Shown here piece by piece: positions 3,247-64,000 of a DNA stretch of 64,000 bases. Position 1 is the stretch's first letter, and every line of letters starts with the position of its first letter. Position numbers and translations under genes: made by a program. The notes beneath the pieces were generated by a model that was given only the letters and a program-made list of their open reading frames with translations, was not told where the DNA came from and ran no database searches. Source of the DNA: Trichosphaerium sp. ATCC 40318 (taxonomy: Eukaryota; Protista; Tubulinea); assembly GCA_038496445.1 (NCBI GenBank), contig JALMLS010000378.1:62001-126000 (forward strand). The letters are read 5' to 3'.

Positions 3247-4045
3247 TTAAAAAATATCGTGAATGGTGGTTTTGCCTTCTCTCATCTTTCGTCTTTTGTT
3301 TCTTTCCTCTAAATTTTTAGGAGGTGCTGGCTCTAAACTTGTGACTTGACGTAGTGTGATGGATAACCTCCTTCCTTTGTGAACTTTTACGCTGTCAATA
3401 ATTTGATCTTTTTTGAACTCAATACCGTGTTGCCAAACCATACTATGATAGAAACGTGTTGAGTCACAAAACAAGTTACGAAAAATATAGGAAAAAAAAA
3501 TATACCGTGAAGGACCTGTCATGACATATAAAGATCTTCGTTGCACGTGCACAGGCACTGTTTTTTTAATATCCAAATTACGGAAATGTACAACACAATC
3601 CGTTAACAGTGATAAGCAAGCAATCTCAGGGCCAAAACAATGTATTCTATCCTTGTGAAAGCGTATACCTTGAGAACCATCATAGTCATTACAAATGACT
3701 TGATCAAACGGTTGCCAATCGCTATTAATTGCTTCAATACGCTTTACTACAGACTCTAGAAGAGGTGGCATATCTAGACGGTCATTAGCGCATTTAGCAA
3801 CGCGCTCAGTCTGTTCAAACGTTAAGAAAAGTTCATAACTTTTAATACGCTTCAAAACATGCCTCATAGTCGTATTCATGTATAAATTGTTGTACACGAC
3901 GTGCTGTCAGCTGTTCCCATGTGTATTTGTTAATAGAAGCTAAGATTTGAGTTTCCTCTTCAGTGGATATGAAGTTAGGTACGTATAGGAGGCCTTCAAT
4001 GGTTTGGTGTCGAATAACCGTAAAGTTATTGGTAGACTTGCTCAT
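3247..4045 (-). CDS. AlkB-family 2OG-Fe(II) dioxygenase
   Basis: GLLYVPNFISTEEE, RRVQQF, NDY..GQGIRFHKD (HxD), SLYVMTGPSR, WQHGI, RLSITLR. The two overlapping ORFs are joined by a GC-AG intron at 3811-3862. Confidence 0.9.
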
Positions 4046-4883: not shown

Positions 4884-7046
4884 TTATTCTAATGGCAATC
4901 CTACTTTCTTGTTTTTCATACGAATCTTTGTAATACCATTTGAACGGTGCGATTAATCTGCCTCTGACGGAATCTGTATGGAAATAATCTTTCACGAAGA
5001 GTTGGTGACTTTTTTAGAGATATGACGATAGACAAGATTACGAGTATTATGATGCCAACAACTATACTTATTATCACCTAATATACAAAGAGTCAGAAAA
5101 GTTAAAGAAGCAATGTTATGCGTACAATGATTATCCAATTTGTACTATTACATCCTGTTTTTGAACTTACAATTACCACAAGACTTTTTTCTTTAGGCAA
5201 AATATTAGTACTTGTATTACAATAAAAGTTTGTGCCTTGTTCGACAACAGACTTTTGAGTACATGAATCTTCATTACTGATTGATACAATTGGTCGTGTA
5301 AGGTTACAATAATCGCCTAAGATAGCGCGTAATTGTCAGTACTTAGGTTCAACGCATGTTAGTTTGGCTTACCTTGCCATTCAAGTATTGAAGAAGATTG
5401 TTTAAAGTCATTAACCACAAGAGTTGAGTTTTCATGAGGAAGAAAGCATCCGCCCACAGTTATCTTAACTCCTTCATTCAAGACAACAGTAGATCCACTT
5501 GGAACGATCAAATCGCCTTGAAAGGAATTATTAAAACATGCTCCAATATTTCAAACTTTCACGTGCCATCGAAAAACAAAGGTTCAGTAACCTGTAATGT
5601 TCCATTGACTACAGCTTTGTTTGATGGAATTGGGGGTAACGTTGATACAATTGAAGGTGAGACGATAGGTATTGCAGATGGAGGCATTGAACTTGGTGAA
5701 AGAGTTGTTGTAGTACGCAAAGTTGGCGGCTCTGTCCTAGAAATAGGAGCATCTGGTGTTGGAGCTAATGTTGTTGGGGGCTGCATACTTGGTGGAAACG
5801 TTGGTGGAAACGTCGGTGGATCCAATGGTGGTGGTACAGGCGGTACAAGCAATGATAAATTATCGAGAAAGATTTTGTTCGTATCCAAGTTTGAAGCATT
5901 GTTCCCAAGTAGAATATATGCTATTTTCCCTAAACTAAGGTTACAAGGCCCAACAAATCGTGACTTGCCGTTGAAGTTTGTGCTGCCAATAGTTATCCAC
6001 CGCAAATTAAATGGAATATTTACAGTTGCGGAAAGCTCAGATATTGTTCCATTGATGTAGAAGGTGCCGCTTGATCCTTGTTTAATCATTGCGATGTGTG
6101 TCCATGTGTTTGCTTGTATATTTTCATCCAATGTTAAAGTTTCAGTCTCATGAGATATTGTTGCGCGCCCATTTACTATGCTTTGTAATTAACAACCTCT
6201 GTTCATATTTCGTGCCTATGGAGATCCGAAAATCTGTTACCATACTAATCGATGGCATAGAAATTACTTCAATGGGTGTGTCAGATAGTTCTAAACGGCT
6301 TTAGTTTTTTTTTTTTGTTGCTACATGCCTGTGTAAACCCAAAAAGATAACACCAGGTTCTGCGAATCTATTTTGGTACCGAGAGGGTATAACGGCGAAG
6401 GTATTCCGGGCAGACTTGACGAAGCCTTTTAGATGTCAGACTAGATTTGACAATACCTTGTACATTTAATTTTAAGCGATATTGCTGCATGCATGTTACA
6501 TTCTAAGTTGTGGTTAGTTTTTAATGTTAACTCTAAACGTTCCTGGGGGTTGCTGTGACAAAAAATGGCTACAATATCAATCAACAAACAATACTTGAAG
6601 GAATGCTAACGCACGAGGACCCAAAACAAAGTGATGAGGTTGACCTTCAGTCATATTGAAAATTGGCACGATAGCGATTTCACTCCCGATATGAAAGCTA
6701 ATAATGAGCTGCTGACATTTTATGCTTTCTGTTATAGGCAAAGTTAAATTTGTATCCACGTCCTGACTCTCAAGTCTAAAATGATCGACAAAGCCTGAAT
6801 ACTCAACTTGTATCTCACTACGAAAGTTGTAATAATCTTCTACAATTTTTAAGCATACCATAGCGTGAGGTTAAAAGCACGAAAGATGTCATCACTTGCG
6901 GTAATATCTACAATTGCCCCAACCTATTGTAAAAATGTAAATATGACACACGACTTCATTTTTGTGACCTGCGAGTAAGCCACTGTTAGTACAAATGCGA
7001 AATTCAGCAGGGTTATCAACTGACTCTGTGATGTGTTCAAACACAT
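4884..7046 (-). CDS. Type I membrane protein family, copy 1 (signal peptide, LamG/ConA-like domain, Pro/Thr stalk, beta domain, TM, basic tail)
   Basis: Signal ending VAYSQ; WTHIAMIKQGSSGTFYING (LamG-like); PT-rich stalk; VNGTL..GDLIVPSGS; TM followed by KKSPTLRERLFPYR. Integrity of all exons not verified. Confidence 0.6.
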
Positions 7047-13376: not shown

Positions 13377-15469
13377 TTATTCTAATGGCATGCCTACTTT
13401 CTTGTGTACAGTGTTTTTCATGTTGAACTTTGTGACATGTCTCTGACGGAACCTGAATGGAAACACTCTTTCACGAAGAGATGGTGACTTTTTTAGAGAT
13501 ATGATGATACCCAAGATGACGAGTATTATGATGCCAACAACAACACATAGTATCACCTTAAAAACCGACTCAGCCAAGTTACAGTGAAGAACCAATTAAA
13601 CACTTACAATGATTGTCCAATTTGTATTACATCTTTTTTCGGCACTGACAAGGAGGATAAGCCTTTTTTCTACAACACAGTGTAAGATTAATAATGGGAA
13701 TTATGGATACCTTGTTCAACAACAGAATTTTGTTTACAAGAATCGCCATTGTTAATTGATACAATTGGTCGTGTAAGGGTACAATAATCACCTATATTGT
13801 GTGAAGTTCGTGCGAAAACAGTAGTCATGTGTTGATAGCTTACCTTGCCATTCGACAATTGAAGAAGATTGTTTAAAGTCATTAACCACAAGGGTTGAGT
13901 TCTCATGAGGAAGAAAGCATCCACCCACAGTTATCTTGACTCCTTCATTCAAGACGACAATAGATCCACTTGGAACGATCAAATCACCTTGATATCATTA
14001 AGCTCTATAATTTTAAACTATCACGTGCCATCAAAAAACAATGGTTCAGTAACCTTTAATGTCCCATTGACTACAGTGTTGTTTGATACACTTACACTGT
14101 TGTTGACTGGAATCGGGGTCGATGTAGATAAACTTGAAGGTAAAGTGGTCGGCAGTTCAGTAGGAGGTAGTGAACTTGGACCAAGTGTTGTAGGAGGAGT
14201 TGAAGTATGTGGAGTTGTGGGTGTGAGCACAGCTGGAGGTTCTGTAGTAGGCGGTTCTGTTGTAGATTTGGTTGATGGAGATTCAGTGGAAAAAGGCGGC
14301 TTGGTTGTAGGTGGTAGTGTACTTGGCTGTACAAGCGACTTTAGCTCCAGTTGATACCTGTTAACATAAGTGCCACTTTCGATGTGCATATTTGCTATAA
14401 TGCCTAACAGTTGTTAAGTCGCCTGATATATCCATTAATACTTACTATTGAACCCTGCATAAATCTCGATCTCATTTAACTATGTTGTACTGGTAAACTA
14501 TTTTCAAATTCTCCATTGATGTATACGCTGGCGTTTGATCCTTGTGTACTAATTGCAAAATGAGTCCATGTTTGTTTGAGAATTTCAAAACTGCGTTCGG
14601 AAGTGGAATCCTTAGCGTGGTATATTAGTTCACCAATTTCTGCATTGTGGTTATTAACAATATTCTGCTAATATTTCGTGCCTATGGAGATCACCAGTTC
14701 TTCGCCCATCCAAGATTTAAACGAAATTTTATAGGTATCCTGATTGACCTCTATGTATTTAAGTTAGCTTGGTTTAGGCAATCTTTTTTGGTGCCTTGAA
14801 AAAACACCAAGAAAGAGATAAAAATATCATTCGGAAACTGACGGAAAGGTAGTGTGTAGGTATTGGAAGCCTACTATATATTAGATAACATTTTTACGGT
14901 GAACTGTACTTCTAATCTTAAGCGATACTGTTGCGTGCAGTTATCCTAAGTTGGATTTAGTCTTCTTTGTCTTACTCAAAACGTTCCTGGCAATCAAGTG
15001 CTAACATTTTTTGTTAGAAGATATAAACGGCGGTGATGATTACGTAGGTACGGAGGTTTAATGCTAAAGTGTCGAGGGTCACCTACGACACCATCGCAAA
15101 TGGGAGTGATACTGAAAATGATGCTACCGCCATCTACACCGATCGTGAGGTTCCCACACTGTATACGGTCTAATATGCGAAACGTTTTATTCAAGTACTG
15201 TGTCTCAATTCTAAATTGGTCGACATTGCCCAAGTGCTCAACTTGTATCTCACTGCGAAAGTTGTAATAATCTTCTACAATTGTTAAACGTACCACAAAG
15301 GATAGATTAACCCAGTTGGATGGCCCTCATATACAGTTATATCTGAAATATTCCCAACCTAATATAAATACATAAACAACGCATGTGACGCCACATTATG
15401 TACCTGCGAGTAAGCTAAGGGAAGTACTAATACGAAAATGATCATAGTAGCGATATGAATCTCTGCCAT
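13377..15469 (-). CDS. Type I membrane protein family, copy 4
   Basis: Signal MAEIHIATMIIFVLVLPLAYSQ; WTHFAI..QGSNASVYING; PT stalk; VILCVVVGIIILVILGIIISLKKSPSLRERVFPFR. Confidence 0.65.
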
Positions 15470-16879: not shown

Positions 16880-19580
16880 TTACGCTTTGAACTGTTGAAA
16901 ATATCCTTGAAAAATCATGTAGCTACACTTTTTACAAAACAAACTTTTCCCAAACTATTCTAAGTAAAGCCGTGTTGACTTGTAAGATGCTGATCGGTAT
17001 CGATAGTATATTGAACGTCCGTAGTATTCAGCGCGCAAAGCAAAACCTCATACCCGTACCTCATCGTGAACCTCACTATTTAGAAAAACGTGGGTAACAA
17101 AAGGTCTATCTTTTCGTCTTGAGCATAAATGATGCTAGATACAACGTCTTACGAATACCCATAGCCATGGGGCGCGGAATAATCAATGCGAGTGTTTTTT
17201 CGTGGACTAGCGAGCGCCTTTACGTTTACATTAAAAAAGTTGTTCACACGTGCACACTTTATTTTTGAAGTGTCCACGAGCTTCTTTACTGTCTTAATCT
17301 CAATATTCCACGCTGTACACCCGAGTACTTGAATATATCGTGAAGAATGAGCGAGTTCGCGCGTGTCGTGAAGAGTAATATTTACTAACACAAAATAACA
17401 TGTTCTAGTGCTAGCTGGAGCGTTTGTGCTTTTGTGGAGATACACGGCTTCGCGATTGTTGTCAACCGTTTTTTTGTGATGTGATGTTACTTATTTTTTT
17501 TCAAGCGAGTAAGTTTGTCTTGCAATTGAACTCTTCGTTCATGCAGCAAGTTTTGAACAAGTTTTATTTTTTTCAGTGATTACTTTCGTGGTTTGTTTTT
17601 GGCCTCGACCAACACGACTACAACACGTTAAAACCACCAAGTTTTGATAGGCAAACTCTTTAGCCAGTCAATAAAACAAATATCAACAATACAAACATAA
17701 CAAACAACAAACAAACTTACAAACTGTTTCCTCAAATGATAAACACTTCGAAACTCTTAGTACGACATTCACTTTTTGTCAAATAAGCCTGCTCTAACAT
17801 AGTGCAATTCGTAGATACTGATATCAATGATTGTATGTGTGACCAATGCGTATGTCGTTCTATCAACTGAAATGTCAGCGACAGATGCACAAGCTGCTTG
17901 TCAAAGTACTCATGGCACAGATCTAGCAACAATCACTTCTCAACAAGACCACGATGATGCCATTGATGCCTGTAATGCCCTTGGCCTTGGTGAGCAATGT
18001 TGGATTGGCGCTACTGATGCCCTTGATGAAGGTACTGCGTTTAAGCAAATACTCCATCATAGCAAGGTCTCACTTTTTAATTGCAGACATATTCCTTTGG
18101 AGAGATGGAAGTGCTGTAGACTACAACCGATTCATGTCTTTGATTGTCACCAGGAATAGTGCTGGAAGAAACTGTGTTGCACTCTCAACCCTTTTTTCTG
18201 GATGGTTCTACGAAACATGTGACGCCTTCAGATACGCTGTTTGCAACGAACCTGTCACTGCAGCCCCTACCGACGCGCCTACAATGGCTCCATCAACCTA
18301 TGTTACCCTCAGCTCTACTTATGACGCTGTCTACGGACAAGATGCATGCCAATCTATCTACGGAACAGACATGGCCAAAATTACAAACGCAGCAGACAAC
18401 GCAGCTGTACAACAAGCTTGTGCTGATGCTGGAGCATCGCAATGTTGGATTGGCGCAAACGAAATTGCCAATGAAGGTACCTTAGAACGTCTTTCATGTG
18501 GCACCTCGTAAGTTCTTACTCTTTTATAGGTACTCTCGTATGGCATGATGGCTCTGCAGTGACATACACCAACTTTGATTCATCAAACAACAACGATCCT
18601 ATTGTCGATTGTGTTAGTATCTTTGCAAGTGGCACCGATGCTGGTAAATGGAGATACAATATCTGCGAAGAAGGTGTCAGACAAACTGTAGTATGCAACG
18701 CTCCTGAAACTGCATCATACGTTGCTGGTGGAATTTACGATGCCTCACTTGGTCAAGATGAATGCCAATCTATGTATGGCACAGATCTCGCCAAGATTCT
18801 AACTGAAGCTGACAATATCGCTGCACAAACAGCATGTGCTGATGCTGGAGCCTCACAATGTTGGATTGGTGCAAACGAAATAGCACTTGAAGGTATGTAT
18901 CCACTACTTTTTGAAAGCAATAGCTCTAACTTTGTTGATAAAGGTACTCTTGTATGGCATGACGGCTCTTCTGTTGAGTACACCAACTTTGATTCATCAA
19001 ACAACAATGACCCTATCGTTGATTGTGTAAGTATCTTTGCAAGTGGTACCGATGCTGGTAAATGGAGATATGACATATGCGAAGAAGGTGTCAGGCAGAC
19101 GATCCTTTGCAATGCTCCTGTTGTGCACTCATATGTGACACTTTCTTCAACATATGATGCTTCACTTGGACAAGATGCATGCCAATCTACCTACGGAACA
19201 GACATGGCCAAGATTACAAACGCAGCAGACAACGCAGCTGTACAACAAGCTTGTGCTGATGCTGGCGCTTCTCAATGTTGGATTGGTGCAAACGAAATTG
19301 CCAATGAAGGTACGTTCGATTTGTAGTACTTTGAGGTAACTCTAAAGTCTTACTCTACTAATAGGTACTCTCGTATGGCATGACGGATCTGCAGTGACAT
19401 ACACCAACTTTGATTCATCAAACAACAACGATCCTATTGTCGATTGTGTGAGTATCTTTGCAAGTGGCACCGATGCTGGTAAATGGAGATACGATATCTG
19501 TGAAGAAGGTGTCAGACAAACTGTCGTTTGTAATGCTCCTTAAACAAACACCATGTGCTTAATAAACAAGCTTTACACTC
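16880..19580 (+). repeat. Left arm of inverted segmental duplication (partner about 44960-47640)
   Basis: Near-identical reverse complement from about 17170-19580; weaker similarity outward to about 16880. Confidence 0.9.
17736..19543 (+). CDS. Secreted protein with four C-type lectin-like domains (copy A)
   Basis: Signal MINTSKLL|ILISMIVCVTNA; four units of AQAAC..DLATIT..CWIGA..EG|TLVWHDGS..Y.NF..DCV..W....C.....VCN, each with an intron at the same position. Confidence 0.9.
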
Positions 19581-19774
19581 ATTTGATCTTAAAACCACCT
19601 CTACTGATACTACAAGAAATAGTAGCTAGCATATCAATCGGTTTGCGTTATTTACTGTAGACAATGAAGTTGTATCACGTGATAAACATAAGAGCGTTAA
19701 AAAGCTATTGACGTGTGAAAATAACTTTATTATGCTATTGTGTTTATTGCAGAAAGTATTGAATAGGTAAAAGT

Positions 19775-22700
19775 TTATGACGATCCACGATGAAGCCTGA
19801 AAAGATCAAACCCTGTTTGATCACTTGTTGCTCTAACTGGTCTGCATCCATTACAGCAAGCGTTCTTTCTAATACACCAACATTTGTATGGCATTCCACC
19901 ACTGTATAGTAGATGTGGGAGTTCGCGAGTGTAGATTGCATCAGAACACTGTGGGTCTCTTGCTGCTGCAACGGCACATTCATTGGCAAAGAGATGCTGG
20001 CTCCATTGCTCGGCACGTCCTCGCATAAATACTTGTTTCTTACAATCCTTCCACGTTTGTCCAGCACAAGTATGGTGTCTTCTTCCTTGGCCAAGGTCTG
20101 CATAATTAAAGTGACCATCACAGTAACTGTCAGCCTGCCTAAAGACGAGCCTAGGAGGATCGAATGCAGGTGTATCCGTTTTTGGTTCAAAATCACAGTT
20201 TCTACAGTCGCTTGTCATTCGCCATTTTGGTTGACGTGTAACGTTTTTGTTAAGATTTGCGTCATCACAAGTTATGCATTCGTCTCCGTGTCTCCATGGG
20301 ATATCTTGATGTTGAGGAGGAGGAACAAATCCTGAGAATAGACGACCTGCGCCCTTGTACCAACATGTCGAGTTGTAAGCTGGGTCTCCTGGGTGTGTAA
20401 CTTCTTCTGGGCCAAAAGTTTCGGTAGCTCTTCGCGCACGGACGGTGTAACACATATCTACACGATCCCATGGTTCTCCAAGATTTGTCACGATGTCTTT
20501 GCATATTTGAGGAATGAGATTTGCTTGTCCGTTGTATCTGTTTGGTTGAAGTCCTCTAGGCAAGACCATGTATCCTGTACATCCACCGCGTATCTCACAA
20601 TCTCTTTCACAAATATTGCCGTCATTGTAGATTCTATGGCATGCTAAATATGCTGTTAGAGGAAGGAATCAAGACAAACAAATCAAAAACTAAAGCTTAC
20701 TAAATATTCTCTCTGGTTTAGGGAAGAAGCAATGATCAATACGACTAAAGAAACAAAGTCAGAACACAAACCGAAAAGAAAAGAAAAATTACGCACGTGT
20801 ATCCTCCAGCAGGGTTCGCAAGACCATAGATGTCTCTAACTTGTCTGTTCACATAGTTAACATCAATACAATCTCTGTAACCTCTCCATTGCCATTGAAT
20901 AACATAGTCTCCAAAGAAGAACCAGATGGTATCGCAAGTCTTACCATATCAGCATCTTGTGGTCTGTGTGCGAAATGATCAAACTTGAAGATACCAAGAA
21001 CAAAGTCAAGCTTGGAGTTAGTGTATTCACAATAATTTCTGACTTCAAGATTGTTCTTGTATCCGAATAATGTGGCGTCATCTCTCCATAGACCAAAAGC
21101 TTCAGGTCGGGGTATGTAGTTCGGAGAAGATTTAGGGATTGCTCCACTGTAGAATTGAAGGAAAGGGTTGAAGCCAGCATCTCTAGCTTTGAACTGTCTG
21201 TGGTACACAGGCAAGTTTCGACATGCACTGTTTGGTGCTTCTCTCATGTACGTGTCCATGAGATCAAAAGATACCTCGTTGAGTCTCACTTCATCTTCAA
21301 GCTTGAGGATAACGTAGTATGAAGGTTGAGTATGACCAACTGCCCATTCGATTTCAAATTGTTGATTTGGACCGACTTGAACATGAGGAGCAGCTTGTCT
21401 TCTTGAAGGACATGGTGTTTGGGTACTAGCGATATCTGAACTTCTGCCAATTCCGAATTGCCAGTTGTGAGCTTGAGTGGTAGGGAACGAAACCAAAGCG
21501 ATAAGGAAGAGAGACAAGACAACAGAAGTTGTCATCTTTCCAGATGAGCGCATTGTCAAGCCAAGGATAGCAAGAGCCATGAAGAGGAAGGAAGTTGTTG
21601 ATTTTGTACCACTCGATGTGGCGCCTCTCGCAGCAATTACAGTTCTACCAGGGTTGGCTGGTGGAAGAGTGTTGGCAAGACATTTACACATACGAAGTCT
21701 ACACAAAAAACAAAACGTAAGTAAAGAGTCGAAAAAGCAAAGTAAAAAACAAACAGTTTGATGTTGATATTCGTACCCGATTCTGGTATCACCACTTCTA
21801 GCATCACAAGTAACTCTATTTCCATTACGTCTTTGTTGTTGGCATCTGGTATCATCATAGTAGCAAAGGCCATCAGTACCCATAGTCGCTCCTTTGGTGC
21901 CACATCCGCTTACATATGGAAGTTTGCAAGGGAAGCTTTGTGGAATGATGAGTTGTTCAATTCTTGTTGGACTGTTAACACGCTCCATATGGACAACATC
22001 ACATTGTAGATTCTCTTCAGCACATCTAGCGGTACAAGATTGACCTCTCTACAAAGAATTGTTTAGTCAATGACTTTCATACTACCAATAAAACAAGAAT
22101 TGTTTTTACCTCGGATTGAAACCATGTTTGACGTGGTTTACTTCTGGTTGATTGAGTGAGTTTGAGCGGTCCCCTGCCACCATTATTTGGCCAATAAAAA
22201 GCGCCAGTATTAGCGTCACCTTGTTTAATCAAACAATGAAACGTTACTGGTCCTGTTCCTCTTGGTGGAGCCTTCCACTTCCATGTTGACTTAAGAGGCT
22301 TGAGTTCAGCGCTGTTATGTGTGATACTTTGGCGACATGAGTGTGAATTAGGCCAAGGTAATTGAAAAAAAGCTACAAGACAAGTCAACAGGTGAAACTA
22401 CGAAAAGCAAAGAAAACAAAGGCAGAAAAATTCGCCATGAAAAAAAAAGAAAAAGAACTTTTGCGTAGTTTGGAAAACATTTATATTTAGAAATGATTGG
22501 TTTTTTCCAGGTTTGTATACAACGTACGGTTCTTTTCATCTGGTAGAAGCCATTCTCCAACTCTGTTTCCATTATTGTCTTGGGCATAGATGAGAATACC
22601 GCGGTATTTGAAATCATAGTTGTTAACACGAATGCTAATGTCCATCACTGTTTCTGGAATGTATTGGGACTCTTGAGCGTCTTCTGCACCAGCCCAAGTA

Positions 22701-31100: not shown

Positions 31101-34100
31101 AATGAGCAGAACTAAATTGATCTAGACGCCAAGGAGAATCAATTGGATGCTCTTGATGAGCTTGCTTAACACTGCACATGCATCCCAAAGACATCATTGC
31201 GCGGAACTCTATTGGCATTTGTGTTCCATAGAATCCTTCAACATCAGGCGAGGATCGTTGCATATCCAATGTATTTTGTTGTGCCTTGTAAAGAGCTTCT
31301 GGTAAACGAACCTCATATAGATTTTGTCTATGACGGTTTCTTGGAAGCTTGTGAGAAACACTTTCCTAAAAAAGACGGTCAACCACATTCTTAAGAAAAA
31401 AGAAGGAAAAAAAATAACGACTCAAAACAACTCATCACGTACGATGCCCATGTGTAGTTTCTCGCCACCAGGAGTGAAGACATCTGCTTTCATATTTTCA
31501 ACTAGATCTTTAGGAACAGAATATGCGTTAAGATGGAATACACGATCAACACTCAACGAAACAGAAGTCATTTGATTTTCATCTGTAACAAACCATACTT
31601 TTAAGAATCCTACAAGAAAAAAAACAGATCAGCACCAAAAAAACCAGTCTTCATCTCAACTTTGTCTTCACGTACCTTGTGAGTCTCGCTCTCTAGGTTC
31701 AATTTGGATAATATGCCAAGGTTGTTGCGTAAGAGACATTGTCTGTTCTCTAAAGTAAGTCTGAAGCGCAGTATCATTACGTCTAGCTTTGGAACCTAAA
31801 CATATTTTTTAGTATTTTTTTTTTTACCAATTACCAGACAACGTACCATATTTCGTGCGTCTCAACTTCTTTTTATGACGCTGTAACTTCCATTTCTTTT
31901 TCATCCAAGCCAAGTATGCTCGAGGTTCGGTTTCCTCATTTGGAGCAGGACCAATATCCATGTCAATCATTTCTTCATCTTCATCTCCGTCACGTTTCCT
32001 AAAGCGAAAAAAGTAAGCATCCAACGTTAACTTGTATGAAAAAAAACAACTCTACTAGGGTCAATCATACCTCTTTTGACCTCTTGAGTTTCCTTTGGAT
32101 TTATATTTTGTGACAGAAGCAACAGCAGGTCGAGATCTCTTACCAACAAGAGTGTCGCCAATATTTTCTGAAAAAAAAAGTAAGTTTTTTGAGGTACAGC
32201 AAAAGGGCTTCAAAATCAAGTACCCATGTCCGCCAATGCTTCGCGAGAAATGGTCTGAAAACCAAGAGTAGTCTGCTTGCCGCTAAATAAATATATCAGA
32301 CGTTGTGATTATTATAAGGTATTTAGGGAAATAGACTAAAAAAAACAGTAAATAAAAATTAGGTGTACCGATTGGCCAATTTCTTACGAAGCCAGTCTGG
32401 TGGTGCTACACGTGGTAGAGGGCTTTCTTTTAACCCTTGCAATAGAGCAGGTATAACAACAATTTTCTGTATAACAGAAACAAGACGAGTACGGTAGTAG
32501 TCCCAATCCAAAATATCTCTAAAAGACAGAAACTTAGTACTAAAAAAATAAATAATTTCGCACCTCAGGTTGGCACCAGCCTTAGCCTTTGATACCCAAC
32601 GTGCTAACCATTTCGCACGCACTGCAGGATCTTGTCTCTTATTGAATAATACAACTGGAATTGCACGTTGTGTGACTTGAACACTTGTAGGCTCTTTTGA
32701 AATGACATACTCACAAACAAGACCTTTAGTAGATCCAGAGTCTTTTGTCATCTCAAGTAATCCAGCGTCAAGCATACGAGAAGCAGTAGTGATCCAAGCA
32801 TTCTTTGTTTTACCATACTCCTTAACATCCTTGTTCATCACACGTGACTCGGAGATTAATCGAATCAAACCTTCATCATCAAAGTTTGCACCCTTCGTAT
32901 CAAGAATGTCCAGATAGTACTCGCAAATACGTGCAATGTTGCTGTAAGCGCCTATTGCAAGAGAATTAGTATACCAAAGGTCTAATGGTACAACTGAAGT
33001 TGACACGTACCCTCAAGTCCTTCACCCATTAGTAGAGGTTTCTCGCCCGAAAGATCGCGTTTATCTTCGCTACCGAATAAATCTTCTTGGAATTCCTTAA
33101 TCAATTTGAGCTCTCCTCTTCTCTTCTTTTCGAAACCTTTAAGCTCAGAGAGATGACCAGTCTTATCGAATACAGCATAACGTTTTTTAAGTTTTTTACC
33201 TGTAATAGAGCGTTAAACAAGGCCGCCAAGAAACACAAACAAAAAAAAAAAACAAAAGTGGTTACCTTCTTCGGTGGAACTAGGCAGTAACATGCACTTG
33301 TATGGTCCATCTACTTCAAAGAAGATAGTACAAACCTTACTCTTATCATATAATCCAGTTTCAGGGTTAAGTGTTTGATATTGATCATTGGTAAAGTAAG
33401 CAAACGTTGCTTGATTTAGGATAGCACAAGCAAAGTTAACAGTAGTTTGATTACCAGACTTGCTCGTAAAAGTGAACTTTTCTGGAAATGATGACGGCAA
33501 GGTACACCAAATACCATCAGTATCAAGTTCTAGAGGTTGCCCTATTCTTTCTATAATCTCCCTGGCTCTCTTGATGATCTCAGCACCGCTGTGTGTAACT
33601 AAAACGTCAAACATTAGTGGAGGTTTTTTTGGAAGAAAAAGAAAGTACCAATTGCTGCCATCTCCATAGAGTACCATCTTGCTCCCCTTGCCATTACATA
33701 ACCGTAAAAGGAGTTCAAGATACACTTATGAGCCATTTGAAGTGAATCATACAGTATAGTACGGTCCTTTGCTACACGAACAGCAAGAGCGTCACCTTCC
33801 TCTTTGGCTTTTCTCAATTTTTTGCCCCAAACTTTCACGGAAGTTTTGTGCTCGTAACGTCTGTCACGGAAACTCTTTACACAGTCGACATAGAAAGAGT
33901 TTTCACGCATGCAGACAGTATCAGTACGTTGTAAAGTCTACATAAACATCAGCACAATCGAAACAACAACGACTAAAATCAAAACTTACCTCTTCTTTAT
34001 GTGTCCTATGGTACACCTGCTTAGAGTATGCTTTTAGCTCTGTCTTTAGTATATCGTTTTGTTGCTCAACAGGTAATTGATAATAATTAACAGTTATAGG

Positions 34101-41000: not shown

Positions 41001-42255
41001 TATTCGTATGCTTCCACTAGACAAAAAATCAATTTTGCTTTTAACCAAGTAATTTTTTGCAATAAAAAAATTGTGGTTTGCTACAGTTTTCTTAAAAACC
41101 GTTCCAATGTGTTGTACGCACTCATCTAAGCACATTGTTATGAATTTATAGTATATATACGGATTTCGATGTTGGGTTTTGAGATGTAGAGTTATGAAGT
41201 AAATCGGGATTGTCTTTTTGAGAAACAAATGTGAAAAAATGTGAAATTCGAAAAAAGACGTAAATGCAACTTACACTGGTTTATGCGTTTCCGTGTGGTG
41301 TCTTCCAGGCGTATTATGATACTCATCTATATTTACAATCGACAGTAATTCACTAAAAATCCTAAGAGCTCAGAATTTGTGCGATCAACCTGTAGTAACT
41401 TGAGGTATGTTATTAGCGTAGAGTAAGATGTTTCCGAGTTGTTTTGATCCAAAAAAGCTTGATCTTTCTGTTATCACTTCCCTAAAGCGCTTATCGCTCA
41501 AAACATGCCTGCATTTTATAACATAAATGAAATATAGCGTTGGTGACGCTTTGAATCAGATACTTGCTTTTTCGGTTTCAAAAAACGTGATCGTACCGTT
41601 AATAATTTCTTTCAGCTTTGCTCCGGGGAAAAGCGTTTATGTACTATGAGAGATGGTTTCCTCGCTTTGACACCCTTGTTGGCAAGCTTGTTGTTTGGTT
41701 TCAACCAGCATTTCTTTTTTTTTACCTCAAAAACCGCTATCATTATTCGCAACGCGTACCATAATGTATTCATGATGCTTTGAAGATCTTTTTAGCTGGT
41801 TTTGCACCAACTAAAGCGATCTTGCTTGGAAACTCTTAAGCATGGTTTGTTCGCGTTATGAGCACAGATACAGGTAGAGAACGCAAACAATACGAAAGTG
41901 AAAAAAGTAAAAGTTATCACGCTTAAACTCTTTCAAAAAATGTCACACGTTTCTTCATCTCCATGCCGTAAAGAGTGTTGACTTCGAATTCATACTTCCA
42001 TTGAGCGAGTAATTCCTTGCTGAAGATTAATTCAACTTGAATTTCGCTATCTTCTTCCTCAGGTAAAACGTTAGCACCACTACTTGCTTGTACCTTATTT
42101 CCGTTGCGCCTGCATCTGCGCTGTTGTGAGGTCTGGGGTTTTCTTGTCAAAGTTGGGAGGAAGTATGCTGATCATCTTGAGGAAATAGTCGACTATTTCC
42201 AACTTTTTACGTTCTGGCGATAGATTCGGTATTCTATTCGTTTGGAACATCGCTA

Positions 42256-42380
42256 GGTGGAGTGCCATACAAATGCTGGTGTATTACAAACAAGGCTTGT
42301 TGCACTGGATGTAAACCAAAAGCAGCCGCACGCAATCACCAGGCTTTGATATTCATTCCCTTCATCGTGGATTGTCATAA
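42256..42380 (+). pseudogene. Inverted relic of the 3' end of the Reeler/LPMO-like gene
   Basis: GGVPYKCWCITNKACCTGCKP..GFDIHSLHRGLS* versus GGMPYKCWCIRKNACCNGCRP..GFDLFRLHRGSS* at 19775-19900; contains a frameshift. Confidence 0.85.
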
Positions 42381-44418: not shown

Positions 44419-44959
44419 TTAGAAAAAAACGGATTTGAGATAGTGTCTCAACGTTGATTTTTTTTCTTGGTATGTTGGTTACCAGTCGCTTTTTTTGTTG
44501 AATATGACGTTTCTCGATTGTAATTGGTTGGATGACCAAACTAGTCCAAAATGAGTTCAAACGTAACAGTAGCTGTGCTGCTACAGTAGAGGATTGGATA
44601 CTAGCAATGTTTTAGTTGCCAGTTGTTAGTTTTCCAAAAATTGTATAAACTGTCTACCAGATAAAGGCGACAGGCACCAGATGCTCGTGTGTGTAGAAAA
44701 GGGTGGTAAGTTGAAAACTTAACCATAATTTTTTCGCTATTGATAAGGCTAATCAGTCGAGTTGGTCAAATACAACATCCTGCAGAATTACTAGTGATGC
44801 CCCGAATGACTTGGATTTGTTAAAACTGTAGTGCACACAGATGTTTACAGGGAAACTGTAGCTGTGAAATAAAGTTTTACTATCCATAATTTTTTGAGCT
44901 ACATCCACAAGAAATCATTATTTCAGAATTGAGAAGGAGTAACTATGACTTTGGAACAA

Positions 44960-47640
44960 CTGAGTGTGAAGCTGTTGGTTTATTAAGCACATGGTGTTTG
45001 TTTAAGGAGCATTGCAAACGACAGTTTGTCTGACACCTTCTTCACAGATATCGTATCTCCATTTACCAGCATCAGTGCCACTTGCAAAGATACTCACACA
45101 ATCGACAATAGGATCGTTGTTGTTTGATGAATCAAAGTTGGTGTATGTCACTGCAGATCCGTCATGCCATACGAGAGTACCTATAGTACAGTAAGACTTT
45201 AGAGTTACCTCAAACTACTACAAATCGAACATACCTTCATTGGCTATTTCATTCGCACCAATCCAACATTGAGAAGCGCCAGCATCAGCACAAGCTTGTT
45301 GTACAGCTGCGTTGTCTGCTGCATTTGTAATCTTGGCCATATCTGTTCCGTAGGTAGATTGGCATGCATCTTGTCCAAGTGAAGCATCATATGTTGAAGA
45401 AAGTGTCACATATGAGTGCACAACAGGAGCATTGCAAAGGATCGTCTGCCTGACACCTTCTTCGCATATGTCATATCTCCATTTACCAGCATCGGTACCA
45501 CTTGCAAAGATACTTACACAATCAATGATAGGGTCATTGTTGTTTGATGAATCAAAGTTGGTGTACTCAACAGAAGAGCCGTCATGCCATACAAGAGTAC
45601 CTTTATCAACAAAGTTATATCCATTACTTTCGAAAGTAGTGGATACATACCTTCAAGTGCTATTTCGTTTGCACCAATCCAACATTGTGAGGCTCCAGCA
45701 TCAGCACATGCTGTTTGTGCAGCGATATTGTCAGCTTCAGTTAGAATCTTGGCGAGATCTGTGCCATACATAGATTGACATGCATCTTGACCAAGTGAGG
45801 CATCGTATATTCCACCAGCAACGTATGATGCAGTTTCAGGAGCGTTGCATACTACAGTTTGTCTGACACCTTCTTCACAGATATCGTATCTCCATTTACC
45901 AGCATCGGTGCCACTTGCAAAGATACTCACACAATCGACAATAGGATCGTTATTGTTTGATGAATCAAAGTTGGTGTATGTCACTGCAGATCCGTCATGC
46001 CATACGAGAGTACCTATGGTAGAGTAAGAACTTACGAGGTGCCATATGAAAAACGTTTTAAAATTCTAGGTACCTTCATTGGCAATTTCGTTAGCGCCAA
46101 TCCAACATTGCGATGCTCCAGCATCAGCACAAGCTTGTTGTACAGCTGCGTTGTCTGCTGCATTTGTAATTTTGGCCATGTCTGTTCCGTAGATAGATTG
46201 GCATGCATCTTGTCCGTAGACAGCGTCATAAGTAGAGCTGAGGGTAACATAGGTTGATGGAGCCATTGTAGGCGCGTCGGTAGGGGCTGCAGTGACAGGT
46301 TCGTTGCATACAGCGTATCTGAAGGCGTCACATGTTTCGTAGAACCATCCAGAAAAAAGGGTTGAGAGTGCAACACAGTTTCTTCCAGCACTATTCCTGG
46401 TGACAATGAAAGACATGAATCGGTTGTAGTCTACAGTACTTCCATCTCTCCAAAGGAATATGTCTGTAATTAAAAAGTGAGACCTTGCTATGATGGAGCA
46501 TTTGCTTAAACGCAGTACCTTCATCAAGGGCATCAGTAGCGCCAATCCAACATTGCTCACCAAGTCCAAGGGCATTACAGGCATCAATGGCATCATCGTG
46601 GTCTTGTTGAGAAGTGATGGTTGCTAGATCTGTGCCATGAGTACTTTGACAAGCAGCTTGTGCATCTGTCGCTGACATTTCAGTTGATAGAACGACATAC
46701 GCATTGGCCACACATACAATCATTGATATCAGTATCTACGAATTGCACTATGTTAGAGCACAGGCGAAATTTAACAAAAAGTGAATGTCGTACTAAGAGT
46801 TTCGAAGTGTTTATCATTTGAGGATACAGTTGTAAGTTTGTTTGTTTGTTGTTTGTTATGTTTGTATTGTTGATATTTGTTTTATTGCCTGGCTAAAGAG
46901 TTTGCCTATCAAAACTTGGTGGTTTCAACGTGTTGTAGTCGTGTTGGTCGAGGCCAAAAACAAACCACGAAAGTAATCACTGAAAAAAATAAAACTTGTT
47001 CAAAACTTGCTGCATGAACGAAGAGTTCAATTGCAAGACAAACTTACTCGCTTGAAAAAAAATAAGTAACATCACATCACAAAAAAACGGTTGACAACAA
47101 TCGCGAAGCCGTGTATCTCCACAAAAGCACAAACGCTCCAGCTAACACTAGAACATGTTATTTTGTGTTGGTAAATATTACTCTTCACGACACGCGCGAA
47201 CTCGCTCACTCTTCACGGTACATTCAAGTACTCGGGTGTGCAGCGTGGAATATTGGGGTTAAGACAGTAAAGAAGCTCGTGGACAATTCAAAAATAAAGT
47301 GTGCACGTGTGAACAACTTTTTTAATGTAAACGTAACGGCGCTCGCTAGCCCACGAAAAAACACTCACATTGGCTTTTCACCCACCGTTATGAGTAATCG
47401 TAGGGCGTTGTGTCTCTAAGACCAAAAGATAAACCTATTGTTACTAAACAGTTTCGCGATATGAGGGGCACGATTACTACAGCTATCAGATCGTTGTCAC
47501 GTTAAAATATACACGTGAAGTTGCTATTGATTTGAGTAAAATCTGAAACGTTCTAGCATGGCTTTTTACTAAGAATAGTTTGGGAAAAGGTTGGTTTTGT
47601 TTACACTGTTGCTGTTTAGCCTATCACGTGATTCAAACAG
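44960..47640 (-). repeat. Right arm of inverted segmental duplication
   Basis: Reverse complement of 16880-19580. Confidence 0.9.
45002..46817 (-). CDS. Secreted protein with four C-type lectin-like domains (copy B)
   Basis: Near-identical to copy A; indels seen fall in introns. Confidence 0.9.
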
Positions 47641-47750: not shown

Positions 47751-49179
47751 TCAATCGTAATTACCTATTATTATACCTTCTCTACATAAAGAATCTTTAA
47801 CATCTCTGCTGAGCTGGTTGCCATCCGCCCACAGGTACTGCAAACCCTTCAAAGCCTTAATCCCATCTTCTGTAACGCTTGTTTTTGATATATTAATACG
47901 TCGCACGCCCACCAATGCCTTGATACCCTCATCTGTAACGGAAGTACCTGTTAAAACAATATGATCTACACCTGCCAATGCTTTTATACCTTCATCTGTA
48001 GCTGAAGTATATGAGAGATCAATATAATCTGAACCAGGTAATGATTGTATACCTTGGTCGGTAATAGAATCACAACCGCTCAAACTAACATCACGTGCGC
48101 CAGCCAACACCTTCAAACTTTCATCAGTTATGCTTGTCTGTCTTAAAAAAATCTCTTCTACACCTGCTAGTGCTTTAACACCTTCGTCTGTCACCTTTGT
48201 CTCTTCTAAAACAATTATATGCACGCCTGCTAGCGCCTTTATACCTTCGTCTGTAACCTTAGTATAAGATAAATTAATTTCATAAACTCCAGCCAATGCT
48301 TTTATACCCTTGTCTGTAATTGAGTCACAGCTACATAAATCAATAGTATGCACACCAGCAATAGATTCAAGACCGCTATCAGTTATCAGGCCATTACCAT
48401 CAATACTCAATGTGTGTACTCCAGCAAGCACAGCAAGACAGTTATCTGTAATTGTTTCGTTGAAAGACAAGTGTATAGCATGAACACCAGCAAGAAGAAT
48501 GACCTCTTTCTCTGTAACTACGTCTCCAAGATTTATCTCAAACACACCTTTAAGTGCTTTTATAGTTTTTTCTGTTATACCTTTACACCCAACAAGTGTG
48601 ATAGTATGAACGCCCTTTAATGTTTGTATTCCTTCATGTGCTATTGCAGTGCGTCCAATGTCAATAGTATGACAACCTTTGAGTGCTACAATGCCTTCAT
48701 TCGTAATATCTTTGCAAGCAAAAAGCTTAATAGTATGAACACCTTTCAATGCTTTGATTCCTTCATCTGTAACTGATGTCCAAGAAAGATCAATAGTGTG
48801 ACACCAGCAAGTGCTTTGATTCCTTCATCTGTAATACTTTTGCAATGTGAAATATCTATTGTATGTACATCGTTAAGCAATAGTAAGCTGGTGTCTGTTG
48901 TTTTTCTAAATCGTACAAAAGAAACACGTGTATTTCGAAGTAGAGGGCTACCAGATAGCATAGATATCCTATATTCATTCTTTACTGTAATACAGCCATA
49001 TCCAACATGGTTATGTACGATGTTATGCATTAAATGACAAGTTTGCGCTGAAATAAGCGTAAAGGCATTGCATTTAAGAATATGAGATAATTTCGACTGG
49101 CAGCGTAAAAAGCAGACAGTTCTGTTGTGCTATGTTTTTGTATCTGGTGCTTTCCTTTTGAGACGTCACCTTGTTCCAT
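47751..49179 (-). pseudogene. F-box + LRR (ITDEGIKALxGVHTIDLS) gene with two frameshifts
   Basis: F-box LFTLPVEIIS is broken at about 49085; 1-nt deletion at about 48800 (ggtgtcacact for GVHT); about 15 LRRs. Confidence 0.65.
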
Positions 49180-62332: not shown

Positions 62333-62441
62333 ACTATTCTAAAAAGTTGCTCACGTTTGCAAAAACAGTTCAATGAACCAAGTTTCCACTTAACTTGATT
62401 TGCTTAAGGCAGTACGACTCCTCAACGTTTGGTTACAACAA

Positions 62442-64000
62442 ATGATGAATTTCTCAGGGATTTCGGTAGATCAAGCGCTTGCTTACTACTATGAGAACCA
62501 TAAAAAAGCGTATACTAAAATAAAGGGAGAACAAATCAAAACTTTTGTAAAACAAGTTGAAAGCATATTAGACGCCGCAAATATAAGTGTAGCTAAACGC
62601 TTAGATGATTTACTTTACAAACAAATTGATACTGCCATCTATACAACCAATCAACCGTCAGTACCTTCTAAGGACCTTACAGTACCTAAACGCAAAGAAC
62701 TAAAGAGGTATGGACCAACATTTCGTATGATGAATTGTTTTTTTGTTTGTTTGTTTTTTTTACTAACACGTGGTACCAAAAGTGTACAATATATGATCCA
62801 TGAGGAACAAAGTATATTAGAGTTTCCTATAGAGATTATTTCAAATATTTTTCATTACACAAAACACAATGCAAGGTTTTCTGCCGCTCAATCATGTAAG
62901 TTATTTTCCAATGTTATTCATGATATTGTGGGATACGAGACAGTTTATCTCTCAAGTATTTTCGATATTCTAAAGGTTAGACAGTATAAAGGCATAATGG
63001 ACAACAGTCTCATTATAATACATGAAGATAGATACCTTAGTATCTATCAATTGTTATCTGGGTGTCGTAGCATAAAAATATCAAACTGGTGTGGCAATAA
63101 TCTCAGAGCAATCGCAAGCGCTCGATCTATTGACCTAAGCGATTCATTCAGAATAACTGATGAAAGCATACAAGACTTGAAAGGAGTTCATACAATTAAC
63201 TTAAGCGACTGTATGGTAACAGATAAAGGTATACAAGCTTTGAGAGGAGTACATACAATTGACATTCGACATTGTGATGCTGTGACAGATGAAGGGTTAA
63301 AAGCCTTGGAAGGAGTTCATAGCATTAACCTTCGCTATTGTACCAAAGTGACGGATGAAGGTATAAGTAAGTTGAAAGGAGTGCACACAATTGATCTCAC
63401 AATGTGTAAGCATATAAGTGATAAAGGTATAAGTAAGTTGAAAGGAGTTCACACTATTGACCTCTCAATGTGTGATCAAATAACAGATGAAGCCTTAAAA
63501 GCGTTGACAGGAGTCCATTCAATATACTTAGCAGGATGCCATCGAGTTACTGATGAAGGCATAAAATCATTGAAAGGTGTTCATACTATTGATCTTAGTA
63601 GTTGTTGCCGTATAACAGATGAAGGTGTAAAAGCATTAAAAGGGGTACACACAATTGAGCTCAGCTATGTGACAGTTACAGATGCAGGTATCAAAGCATT
63701 GAAAGGAGTTCATACCATTACTCTCCGATATTGTAACACAGTGACGGATGAAGGGATAAAAGCTCTGAGAGATGTACATACAATTACCCTCTACCATTGC
63801 AACCAAGTTACAGATGAAGGGATAAAAGCGTTGAATGGTGTTTATAGCATCAGTTTGTGGTTTATGCACTCAGTGACAGATGAAGGGATAAAAGCTTTAA
63901 AAGGTGTACACACTGTTACTCTTCATGAGTGTGGTCGAGTGACAGATGAAGGGATAAACGCATTGAAAGATGTACCTAAAATTTATATCAATCATTGTAG
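62442..64000 (+). CDS. F-box + LRR protein (3' truncated)
   Basis: ILEFPIEIISNIF F-box; more than 10 repeats of VTDEGIKALKGVHTIDLSxC running off the window end. Confidence 0.85.
   Translation, partial: MMNFSGISVDQALAYYYENHKKAYTKIKGEQIKTFVKQVESILDAANISVAKRLDDLLYKQIDTAIYTTNQPSVPSKDLTVPKRKELKRYGPTFRMMNCFFVCLFFLLTRGTKSVQYMIHEEQSILEFPIEIISNIFHYTKHNARFSAAQSCKLFSNVIHDIVGYETVYLSSIFDILKVRQYKGIMDNSLIIIHEDRYLSIYQLLSGCRSIKISNWCGNNLRAIASARSIDLSDSFRITDESIQDLKGVHTINLSDCMVTDKGIQALRGVHTIDIRHCDAVTDEGLKALEGVHSINLRYCTKVTDEGISKLKGVHTIDLTMCKHISDKGISKLKGVHTIDLSMCDQITDEALKALTGVHSIYLAGCHRVTDEGIKSLKGVHTIDLSSCCRITDEGVKALKGVHTIELSYVTVTDAGIKALKGVHTITLRYCNTVTDEGIKALRDVHTITLYHCNQVTDEGIKALNGVYSISLWFMHSVTDEGIKALKGVHTVTLHECGRVTDEGINALKDVPKIYINHC

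Follow-up and report, generated by a model that had tools for sequence, protein, structure and literature searches.

New families of lytic polysaccharide monooxygenases (LPMOs), from auxiliary activity (AA) family AA13 to AA17, have each widened the range of substrates, hosts and chemistry known for the copper histidine brace. To our knowledge, none of these families was found in amoebae or in any other phagotrophic protist. Here we analyse a 64,000-nucleotide stretch of DNA from Trichosphaerium sp. ATCC 40318 (Tubulinea; assembly GCA_038496445.1, contig JALMLS010000378.1, positions 62,001 to 126,000; hereafter the window, whose numbering is used for all coordinates), which carries on its minus strand a gene for an LPMO-like domain. 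This domain is probably a member of an undescribed protist family of LPMO-type histidine-brace domains, which we call the HNW family after its first three residues (His1 and Asn2 are invariant, Trp3 near-invariant). The brace, as set out in histidine-brace reviews, is built from an N-terminal His, through both its free amine and its side chain, and from a second His. X325 proteins have the brace, show no activity on polysaccharides and have a role in copper import, and AA10 LPMOs carry a helical 'bud' between strands 1 and 2. The layout of the HNW domain differs from those of the known LPMO families in its HNW signature, in a pair of His residues 45 apart, in an insert that follows the second His, and in a tight turn before the Tyr proposed as axial residue.

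The gene lies in DNA of ~38-42% G+C and has short GT..AG introns. Within a long precursor open reading frame (ORF), translation reveals a hydrophobic segment resembling a signal peptide, MTTSVVLSLFLIALVSFPTTQA (21535-21470), which starts with Met and ends T-Q-A directly before the proposed N-terminal histidine-brace ligand, His1 (21469-21467), the first residue of the signature HNWQFGIGRS; the family's Arg9 is present in the same string. The proposed second copper ligand, His46 (21334-21332), lies in FEIEWAVGH, in the loop after the strand FEIEWAVG. An initial annotation, made from the letters alone, had pointed to a His right behind a predicted cleavage site with an Arg following it, to a second His 45 residues on and to the closing-strand sequence GDYVIQWQWRGYRDCIDV, and translation places all of these where they had been put, the last in another frame, from 20912 onwards. 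These features occupy the best-conserved columns of the family of 216 relatives described below, and are therefore not due to chance. The end of the domain, which had been set at 20855, has moved: the run continues to 20797, across a 52-nt intron and into exon 5. The first 185 residues (21469-20915), in what we call frame A, are supported by phmmer relatives, by colinearity with homologs in BLAST and by the family alignment (A1, below), and include a partly helical insert of ~105 residues after the His46 hairpin. The closing piece (20912-20797), which comprises the last two strands in the other frame, is likewise colinear with homologs; its Tyr12 (20879-20877) is family position 204, the proposed axial residue, and its Cys15 is family C207. 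The GT...AG intron (20796-20745) was read from the sequence, and its junction restores homology of the WTRIDHC type; exon 5 (20744-20701) supplies the domain tail, with a near-invariant RIDHC (D-H-C) motif homologous to family positions 236-238.

An exhaustive phmmer protein search with the 175-residue first piece as query (E ≤ 1e-3) returned 216 relatives, 32 of them at E ≤ 1e-10, with identities of 25-46%. Most are 900-1500 aa long, which is why a word-index search limited to proteins of 208-663 aa came back blank. None of the 216 bears a functional name, and all those with a source name are labelled hypothetical or uncharacterized. The relatives come from metatranscriptome and metagenome contigs, from EukProt transcriptomes and from one UniRef entry. 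The closest named ones are EukProt transcripts from two tubulinean amoebae, Flabellula baltica and Rhizamoeba saxonica, and the family reaches into Rhizaria with the chlorarachniophyte Lotharella globosa (UniRef, 'Uncharacterized protein'). A seed hidden Markov model delimited 77 full-length domains of ~230-280 residues; 76 full domains and the two window pieces make up alignment A1 (78 rows).

Of the 131 domains whose start is present, 127 open with His. In the 127 domains that have sufficient sequence ahead of them, the residues before the start resemble a signal-peptidase site: -1 is occupied by Ala, Gly or Ser in 120 and -3 by Ala, Val, Thr, Cys, Ser or Gly in 124. The preceding 22 residues include a strongly hydrophobic window of 10 residues in 114 of the 127, compared to 6% at random positions in the same proteins. 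In 37 domains the His stands no later than residue 45, preceded by a normal N-terminal signal peptide, and in the other 90 it lies deep inside a longer protein, behind an internal signal-like segment. An invariant His that opens the domain right at a site of the signal-peptidase type fits what a histidine brace requires, and the sequence suggests that the mature protein would start with His1 after signal-peptide cleavage (TQA|H in the window).

The residues conserved in A1 include those that a histidine brace would need. His1, Asn2, Arg9, His46, Tyr76 and Asp206 are invariant (76/76), and Trp3, Trp201, Tyr204, Asp209 and Asp236-His237-Cys238 nearly so. His46 is the only invariant His besides His1 (His29 is kept in 69 and His98 in 68 of the 76). 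Position 204 is Tyr in 74 domains and Phe in two, the same alternation as is seen at the LPMO axial residue. C19 and C207 are both present in 61 domains and both absent in 15, with no discordant case, and form the top mutual-information pair among the 76 sequences; this perfect covariation implies a disulfide between the N-terminal segment and the last strand, where C207 stands three residues past Tyr204. A mutual-information scan for contacts around His46 gave nothing above noise with 76 sequences, and only C19-C207 stood out. The tail motif is kept at D236 in 72, at H237 in 75 and at C238 in 70 of the 76 domains. This Asp-His-Cys motif, encoded by exon 5, comes after the last strand in the low-confidence tail of the model described below. 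C238 lacks a pairing partner within the domain itself, and the motif could dock onto the following module or reach towards the metal site.

The fold was modelled with AlphaFold2 on an ortholog, P0006 (residues 400-645), with the 78 rows of A1. The initial annotation had held that a fold other than an Ig-like beta-sandwich would speak against an LPMO-like domain; the model is a beta-sandwich, with a predicted local distance difference test score (pLDDT) of 91 and a predicted template modelling score (pTM) of 0.88. It has a partly helical insert at residues 59-165, a tail poorly defined after residue 216, and His46 in a hairpin loop (45-51). A structural search that was independent of Foldseek, against 48,161 PDB representatives, gave as best match LaX325 (6ibh; Z 7.4, root mean square deviation 3.4 A and 126 residues aligned in this search, and Z 7.4-7.5, 3.3-3.4 A and 124-126 of its 150 residues over this and the second comparison below), followed among proteins of the LPMO type by AA15 (TdAA15A, 5msz; Z 7.1, 120 residues, 18% identity), AA13 (4opb; Z 6.2), AA9 (5acf; Z 5.9), AA10 (4oy7; Z 5.8), AA16 (7ze9; Z 5.7) and AA11 (7p3u; Z 5.7). 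LPMO domains of seven families account for 13 of the top 50 matches, which is far beyond chance because LPMO-type chains make up very little of the library. A second structural comparison, with Foldseek's top 1000 chains, agrees and adds CBP21, EfAA10A, AfAA11B and others, and a shape search of the ESM Atlas is headed by LPMO_10 clusters (TM 0.39-0.45). Pilins, adhesins and MG domains of alpha-2-macroglobulin and complement are interleaved with the LPMOs among the structural matches; MG domains have been reported as non-LPMO neighbours of true LPMOs as well.

In every LPMO row the alignment begins at the N-terminal His of the chain, which is paired with His1 (this His is numbered residue 1 in the LPMO entries, or His35, His30, His29 or His28 where the signal peptide is counted). 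At the other end of the domain, Tyr204 falls on the published axial Tyr or Phe in all nine rows checked, which represent eight enzymes of AA9, AA10, AA11, AA13 and AA15, 4oy7 occurring in both searches. The counterparts are Tyr164 in 5acf, Phe219 in 4oy7, Tyr140 in 4mai, Tyr224 in 4opb, Phe193 in 5ftz, Phe185 in 4a02, Phe187 in 2ben and Tyr184 in 5msz (axial residue numbers from PMC5094447, table, and PMC5823890). Coincidence is unlikely, since the agreement spans five families. The proposal that the closing strands carry the axial aromatic residue is supported on both counts, with Tyr or Phe at position 204 in 76 of 76 domains and Tyr204 on the axial residue in 9 of 9 rows.

Compared with the closest described systems, the HNW domain combines features of several. 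It resembles LaX325 of the X325/Bim1 type in its compact sandwich, in the lack of a large AA10-type bud before the second His, in its predicted secretion and in its N-terminal His; however, the two have no sequence similarity (6ibh), and X325 proteins are fungal, anchored by glycosylphosphatidylinositol (GPI) and use an Asp on a Gly-rich loop as fourth ligand, whereas the HNW domain keeps an axial-position Tyr or Phe, carries an insert of ~105 residues behind the His46 hairpin, has a PAN-like module next to it and lacks a C-terminal anchor. With AA15 and AA10 it aligns from the N-terminal His to the C-terminal strand (AA10: CBP21, CelS2 and EfAA10A, Z 5.3-6.0), and it shares with them an Arg a few residues past His1 and the closing motif aromatic-x-x-Cys-x-Asp-Val. 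Its signature is HNW in place of their HG, however, and its second His is at 46 rather than at ~91-144; it also lacks the bud between the first two strands and has a different insert past its second His. AA11 has the closest His spacing (His1/His60/Tyr140; PMC5094447), and structural matches to AA11 and AA9 reach Z 5.4-5.9. The turn between the last two strands is two residues long in HNW, in contrast to ~9 in AA11, and HNW is found in protists whereas AA11 and AA9 are fungal. We favour the histidine-brace reading because the domain starts exactly at His1, His46 is invariant, a Tyr or Phe stands at the axial position with a disulfide adjacent to it, and the fold agrees. The initial annotation's view of a divergent LPMO-like domain holds up on the same features, His1 at the start, the second His, the last-strand Tyr or Phe, and a sandwich model whose best matches are of the LPMO type.

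We worked out the exons of the whole gene by eye and by a landmark search, and checked homology separately for each. Exon 1 (22939-22528) encodes a signal peptide and the N-terminal half of a Reeler domain, exon 2 (22372-22110) its C-terminal half, exon 3 (22048-21777) a Cys-rich region, and exon 4 (21698-20797) a hydrophobic hairpin and then the LPMO-like domain; all four have homolog matches. The first hydrophobic segment is at the start of exon 4 (~21595-21551). Exon 6 (20652-19778), supported by 60 homologs and ended by a stop codon at 19777-19775, encodes a conserved Cys-rich C-terminal module, and translation finds no hydrophobic tail at the C-terminus of the product. The Reeler match (Pfam) is weak in the window and clear in the homolog P0003. 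Searches with the separate exons match the same long homologs in identical order; in P0001, for example, the matches are residues 31-129, 133-217 and 219-306 for exons 1-3, 377-612 for the domain and 615-893 for the C-terminal module. This order makes the LPMO-like domain the fourth module in a protein of ~920 residues.

The C-terminal module is found in at least 60 of the 150 relatives listed. Its model has a pLDDT of 74 overall and of 80-96 in the last 170 residues, and structural search gives the last ~125 residues (~20161-19781) a PAN/apple-like fold. All of the top 12 structural matches are PAN, apple or MANEC domains (Z at most 6.7), PAN/apple or WSC-type modules make up most of the eleven that follow, and only 47 library chains reach Z ≥ 2. 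The matches include the MANEC domain of HAI-1, the N domain of HGF, the Sarcocystis lectin SML-2 and the apple domains of Toxoplasma MIC4 and of kallikrein, and WSC modules, those of fungal copper oxidases included, rank lower; a weak top match from Foldseek agrees. Modules of this kind are binders of glycans or proteins, and it is plausible that this PAN/apple-like module binds a glycan or a protein too. Elsewhere in the window, the translation of 42205-42377 on the plus strand resembles the last ~50 Cys-rich residues of the PAN-like module (tblastn E 1.7e-7), and this stretch may represent a second gene with a PAN domain, or else a fragment of a gene.

Several observations weigh against an LPMO-type histidine brace in this domain, and the first come from sequence comparison. 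Pfam gave nothing for the domain in the window pieces and seven full homologs, and across the 78 domain sequences at E ≤ 10 it gave, as the only family matched by more than one member, AA9 (two members, E ≥ 0.03, the E of 0.03 lying below significance), with no match to LPMO_10. PDB chains, including AA9-AA17 and X325, yielded no sequence match to the family profile or the window piece in profile and phmmer searches; Certhrax and a light-harvesting protein, which did appear, were judged noise. A profile built from 46 positions in the last two strands gives an AA11 LPMO as its best PDB match (strand IP..PG.Y...W.W, E 0.53), and this and the AA9 match (E 0.03) are weak sequence echoes in favour of the LPMO reading, neither of them significant alone. 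As the initial annotation had it, the domain fits no assignable family: no family with a Pfam model and no solved structure is matched by sequence. We also found no published description of the HNW family in the literature on LPMOs, Reeler domains, amoebae and other protists or in histidine-brace reviews, a coverage that is incomplete.

The structural evidence has weaknesses of its own. Foldseek found no PDB match at E ≤ 1e-3, and AA10 entries appear only at E ~0.05. All structural Z scores are below 8 (5.4-7.5 for the best of the LPMO type), a range that may reflect a mere common beta-sandwich arrangement, and so the models point to similarity with LPMOs at the level of fold and leave homology unproven. 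The top match, X325, is a copper binder without polysaccharide activity, and a language-model feature search led to F5/8 type C clusters (0.94; 141-148 of 256 features in common). The modelled ortholog P0006 is only ~33-47% identical to the window pieces, the window protein being unreadable through its frame break. As to the individual residues, His46 is assigned as a ligand from its invariance and its position in a loop, and the counterparts of Tyr204 were obtained by counting back from the last aligned pair, which assumes that the last strand is ungapped. Several LPMO families (AA9, AA11, AA13 and some AA10) have a second-sphere Gln or Glu two residues before the axial residue, and the position two residues before Tyr204 is variable in A1.

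The window copy is, moreover, out of frame, with a 1-nt break at 20914-20913. Frame A is homologous through ...DADMVRLAIPSGSS, with its last good codon at 20917-20915, and matches the D.A.F.IP.... stretch of the homologs; the other frame resumes at GGA (20912; G-D-Y...), which leaves over a tt (20914-20913) where homologs have one codon. In the BLAST comparison the homologs have exactly one residue between the two pieces that flank the break, and therefore one base is missing in or beside the TTT run. A break at DADM, where the long ORF seems to diverge, was rejected on the grounds that the homology of frame A extends through VRLAIPSGSS. A tiny intron or a programmed frameshift was likewise rejected, since no GT..AG pair fits both frames and homologs have one residue there. 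The choice between a very recent pseudogene and an assembly error (indel) is about even. That the copy is a dead pseudogene, such that the domain is not made from this gene whatever the rest of the family does, falls just short of an even chance in our judgement: the one-base break is followed in the original frame by a stop 22 codons downstream, but it is the sole lesion in a gene whose six exons are otherwise open and whose splice sites are canonical, nearly every family-invariant residue is kept, and a T run is a typical place for an assembly indel.

An alternative that concerns the family as a whole, and that we consider less likely than not, is that the HNW domain is a histidine-brace copper binder or handler of the X325/Bim1 type, which would act at the cell surface or phagosome in the uptake or storage of copper or in electron transfer and would cleave no polysaccharide. 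The rank of LaX325 as the single best structural match speaks for it, although its lead over AA15 is only 0.3 Z, which is a tie. The invariant or near-invariant D151, D181, D206 and D209 could fill a fourth coordination site as in X325, but the axial Tyr or Phe is conserved as in catalytic LPMOs, whereas X325 is marked by its Asp ligand. The partner modules also point both ways: Reeler domains are known from ferric-reductase-type proteins too, whereas the PAN/apple-like module after the domain suits a macromolecular ligand, and the window gene has no GPI-type hydrophobic C-terminus. Very improbable, finally, is a non-metal beta-sandwich binding module, such as a discoidin (F5/8-type-C-like) domain or an Ig-like adhesin in which His1 is conserved for some other reason, for although the feature search led to F5/8 type C clusters and many pilin, adhesin and MG sandwiches score within 1-2 Z units of the LPMOs, the features held in common are fewer than is typical of true family members, the discoidin fold was rejected since it has no entry in the top 50 of either structural search, and there is no known reason for an adhesin to need an invariant first-residue His exactly at a peptidase site together with a second invariant His and a Tyr or Phe at the LPMO axial position.

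With these alternatives weighed, we return to the HNW domain as an LPMO-type histidine brace, whose cleavage, copper binding, catalysis and substrate we infer as follows. Signal peptidase would cut after TQA and leave His1 with a free amino group. The amine and the side chain of His1, together with His46, would hold one copper ion at the end of a fibronectin-III-like beta-sandwich, with Tyr204 on the last strand beneath the copper as axial residue, and a Cys19-Cys207 disulfide would tie the N-terminal segment to that strand. Given that there is no C-terminal hydrophobic tail, the product cut at His1 would be a soluble two-module protein without a membrane anchor, located outside the cell or in the lumen of the secretory pathway or phagosome. 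Its most likely activity would be a copper-dependent oxidative attack on a prey or cyst-wall polysaccharide. We lean to a macromolecular substrate in view of the conserved axial Tyr and of the PAN-like module alongside, whereas X325 as top match and the lack of a conserved Gln or Glu two residues before Tyr204 make us lean away from an oxidative enzyme; on balance, the HNW domain may be a true oxidative enzyme, a possibility that we place somewhat below even and close to that of the X325/Bim1 type. We offer with similar reserve, and as the more tentative proposal, that HNW domains constitute a new auxiliary-activity family, with members that are catalytically active LPMOs and occur widely among phagotrophic protists (Amoebozoa and Rhizaria), and that they would be released from a Reeler-anchored precursor by way of an internal signal peptide and be targeted by the PAN/apple module to polysaccharides of prey or cyst walls.

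The genomic context had also been cited in favour of polysaccharide targets, with C-type lectins and a GH5 cellulase said to lie in the same window. The C-type lectin ORFs are there, but GH5 is absent among the 20 largest open frames, in a scan that was not exhaustive, and the argument from context is weak. An inverted repeat of 2.4 kb, with arms at 17184-19588 and 44954-47372 that are 96.6% identical, carries C-type lectin ORFs and internal direct repeats of ~400-800 bp in each arm, and its left arm ends ~190 bp from the 3' end of the LPMO-like gene. Four dispersed or tandem copies of a 0.7-1.25-kb repeat, 77-81% identical, lie between 4880 and 14092 and share an open frame that starts VFMRKKAS.HSYL.SFIQD (5428-6057 and 13899-14351); the copy that was scanned has no Pfam match. 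Other frames in the window encode the thumb domain of a DNA polymerase epsilon catalytic subunit (32362-33006, minus strand; Pfam E 2e-43), which is part of a larger split gene, a 2OG-Fe(II) oxygenase (AlkB-like) domain (3250-3906, minus strand; Pfam E 4e-10), and, in two long frames (47754-48749, minus strand, and 62394-63998, plus strand), leucine-rich repeats of the LRR_6 type, the second frame running past the end of the window.

The HNW family comprises at least 216 sequence clusters that carry no annotation, and in most of its members the essential N-terminal His would be exposed by way of a signal-peptide-like segment in the middle of the protein. If active, the family would point to oxidative polysaccharide breakdown in the feeding or encystment of protists and would provide a new scaffold for enzyme work; if it binds copper only, it would extend copper handling of the X325/Bim1 type beyond the fungi.

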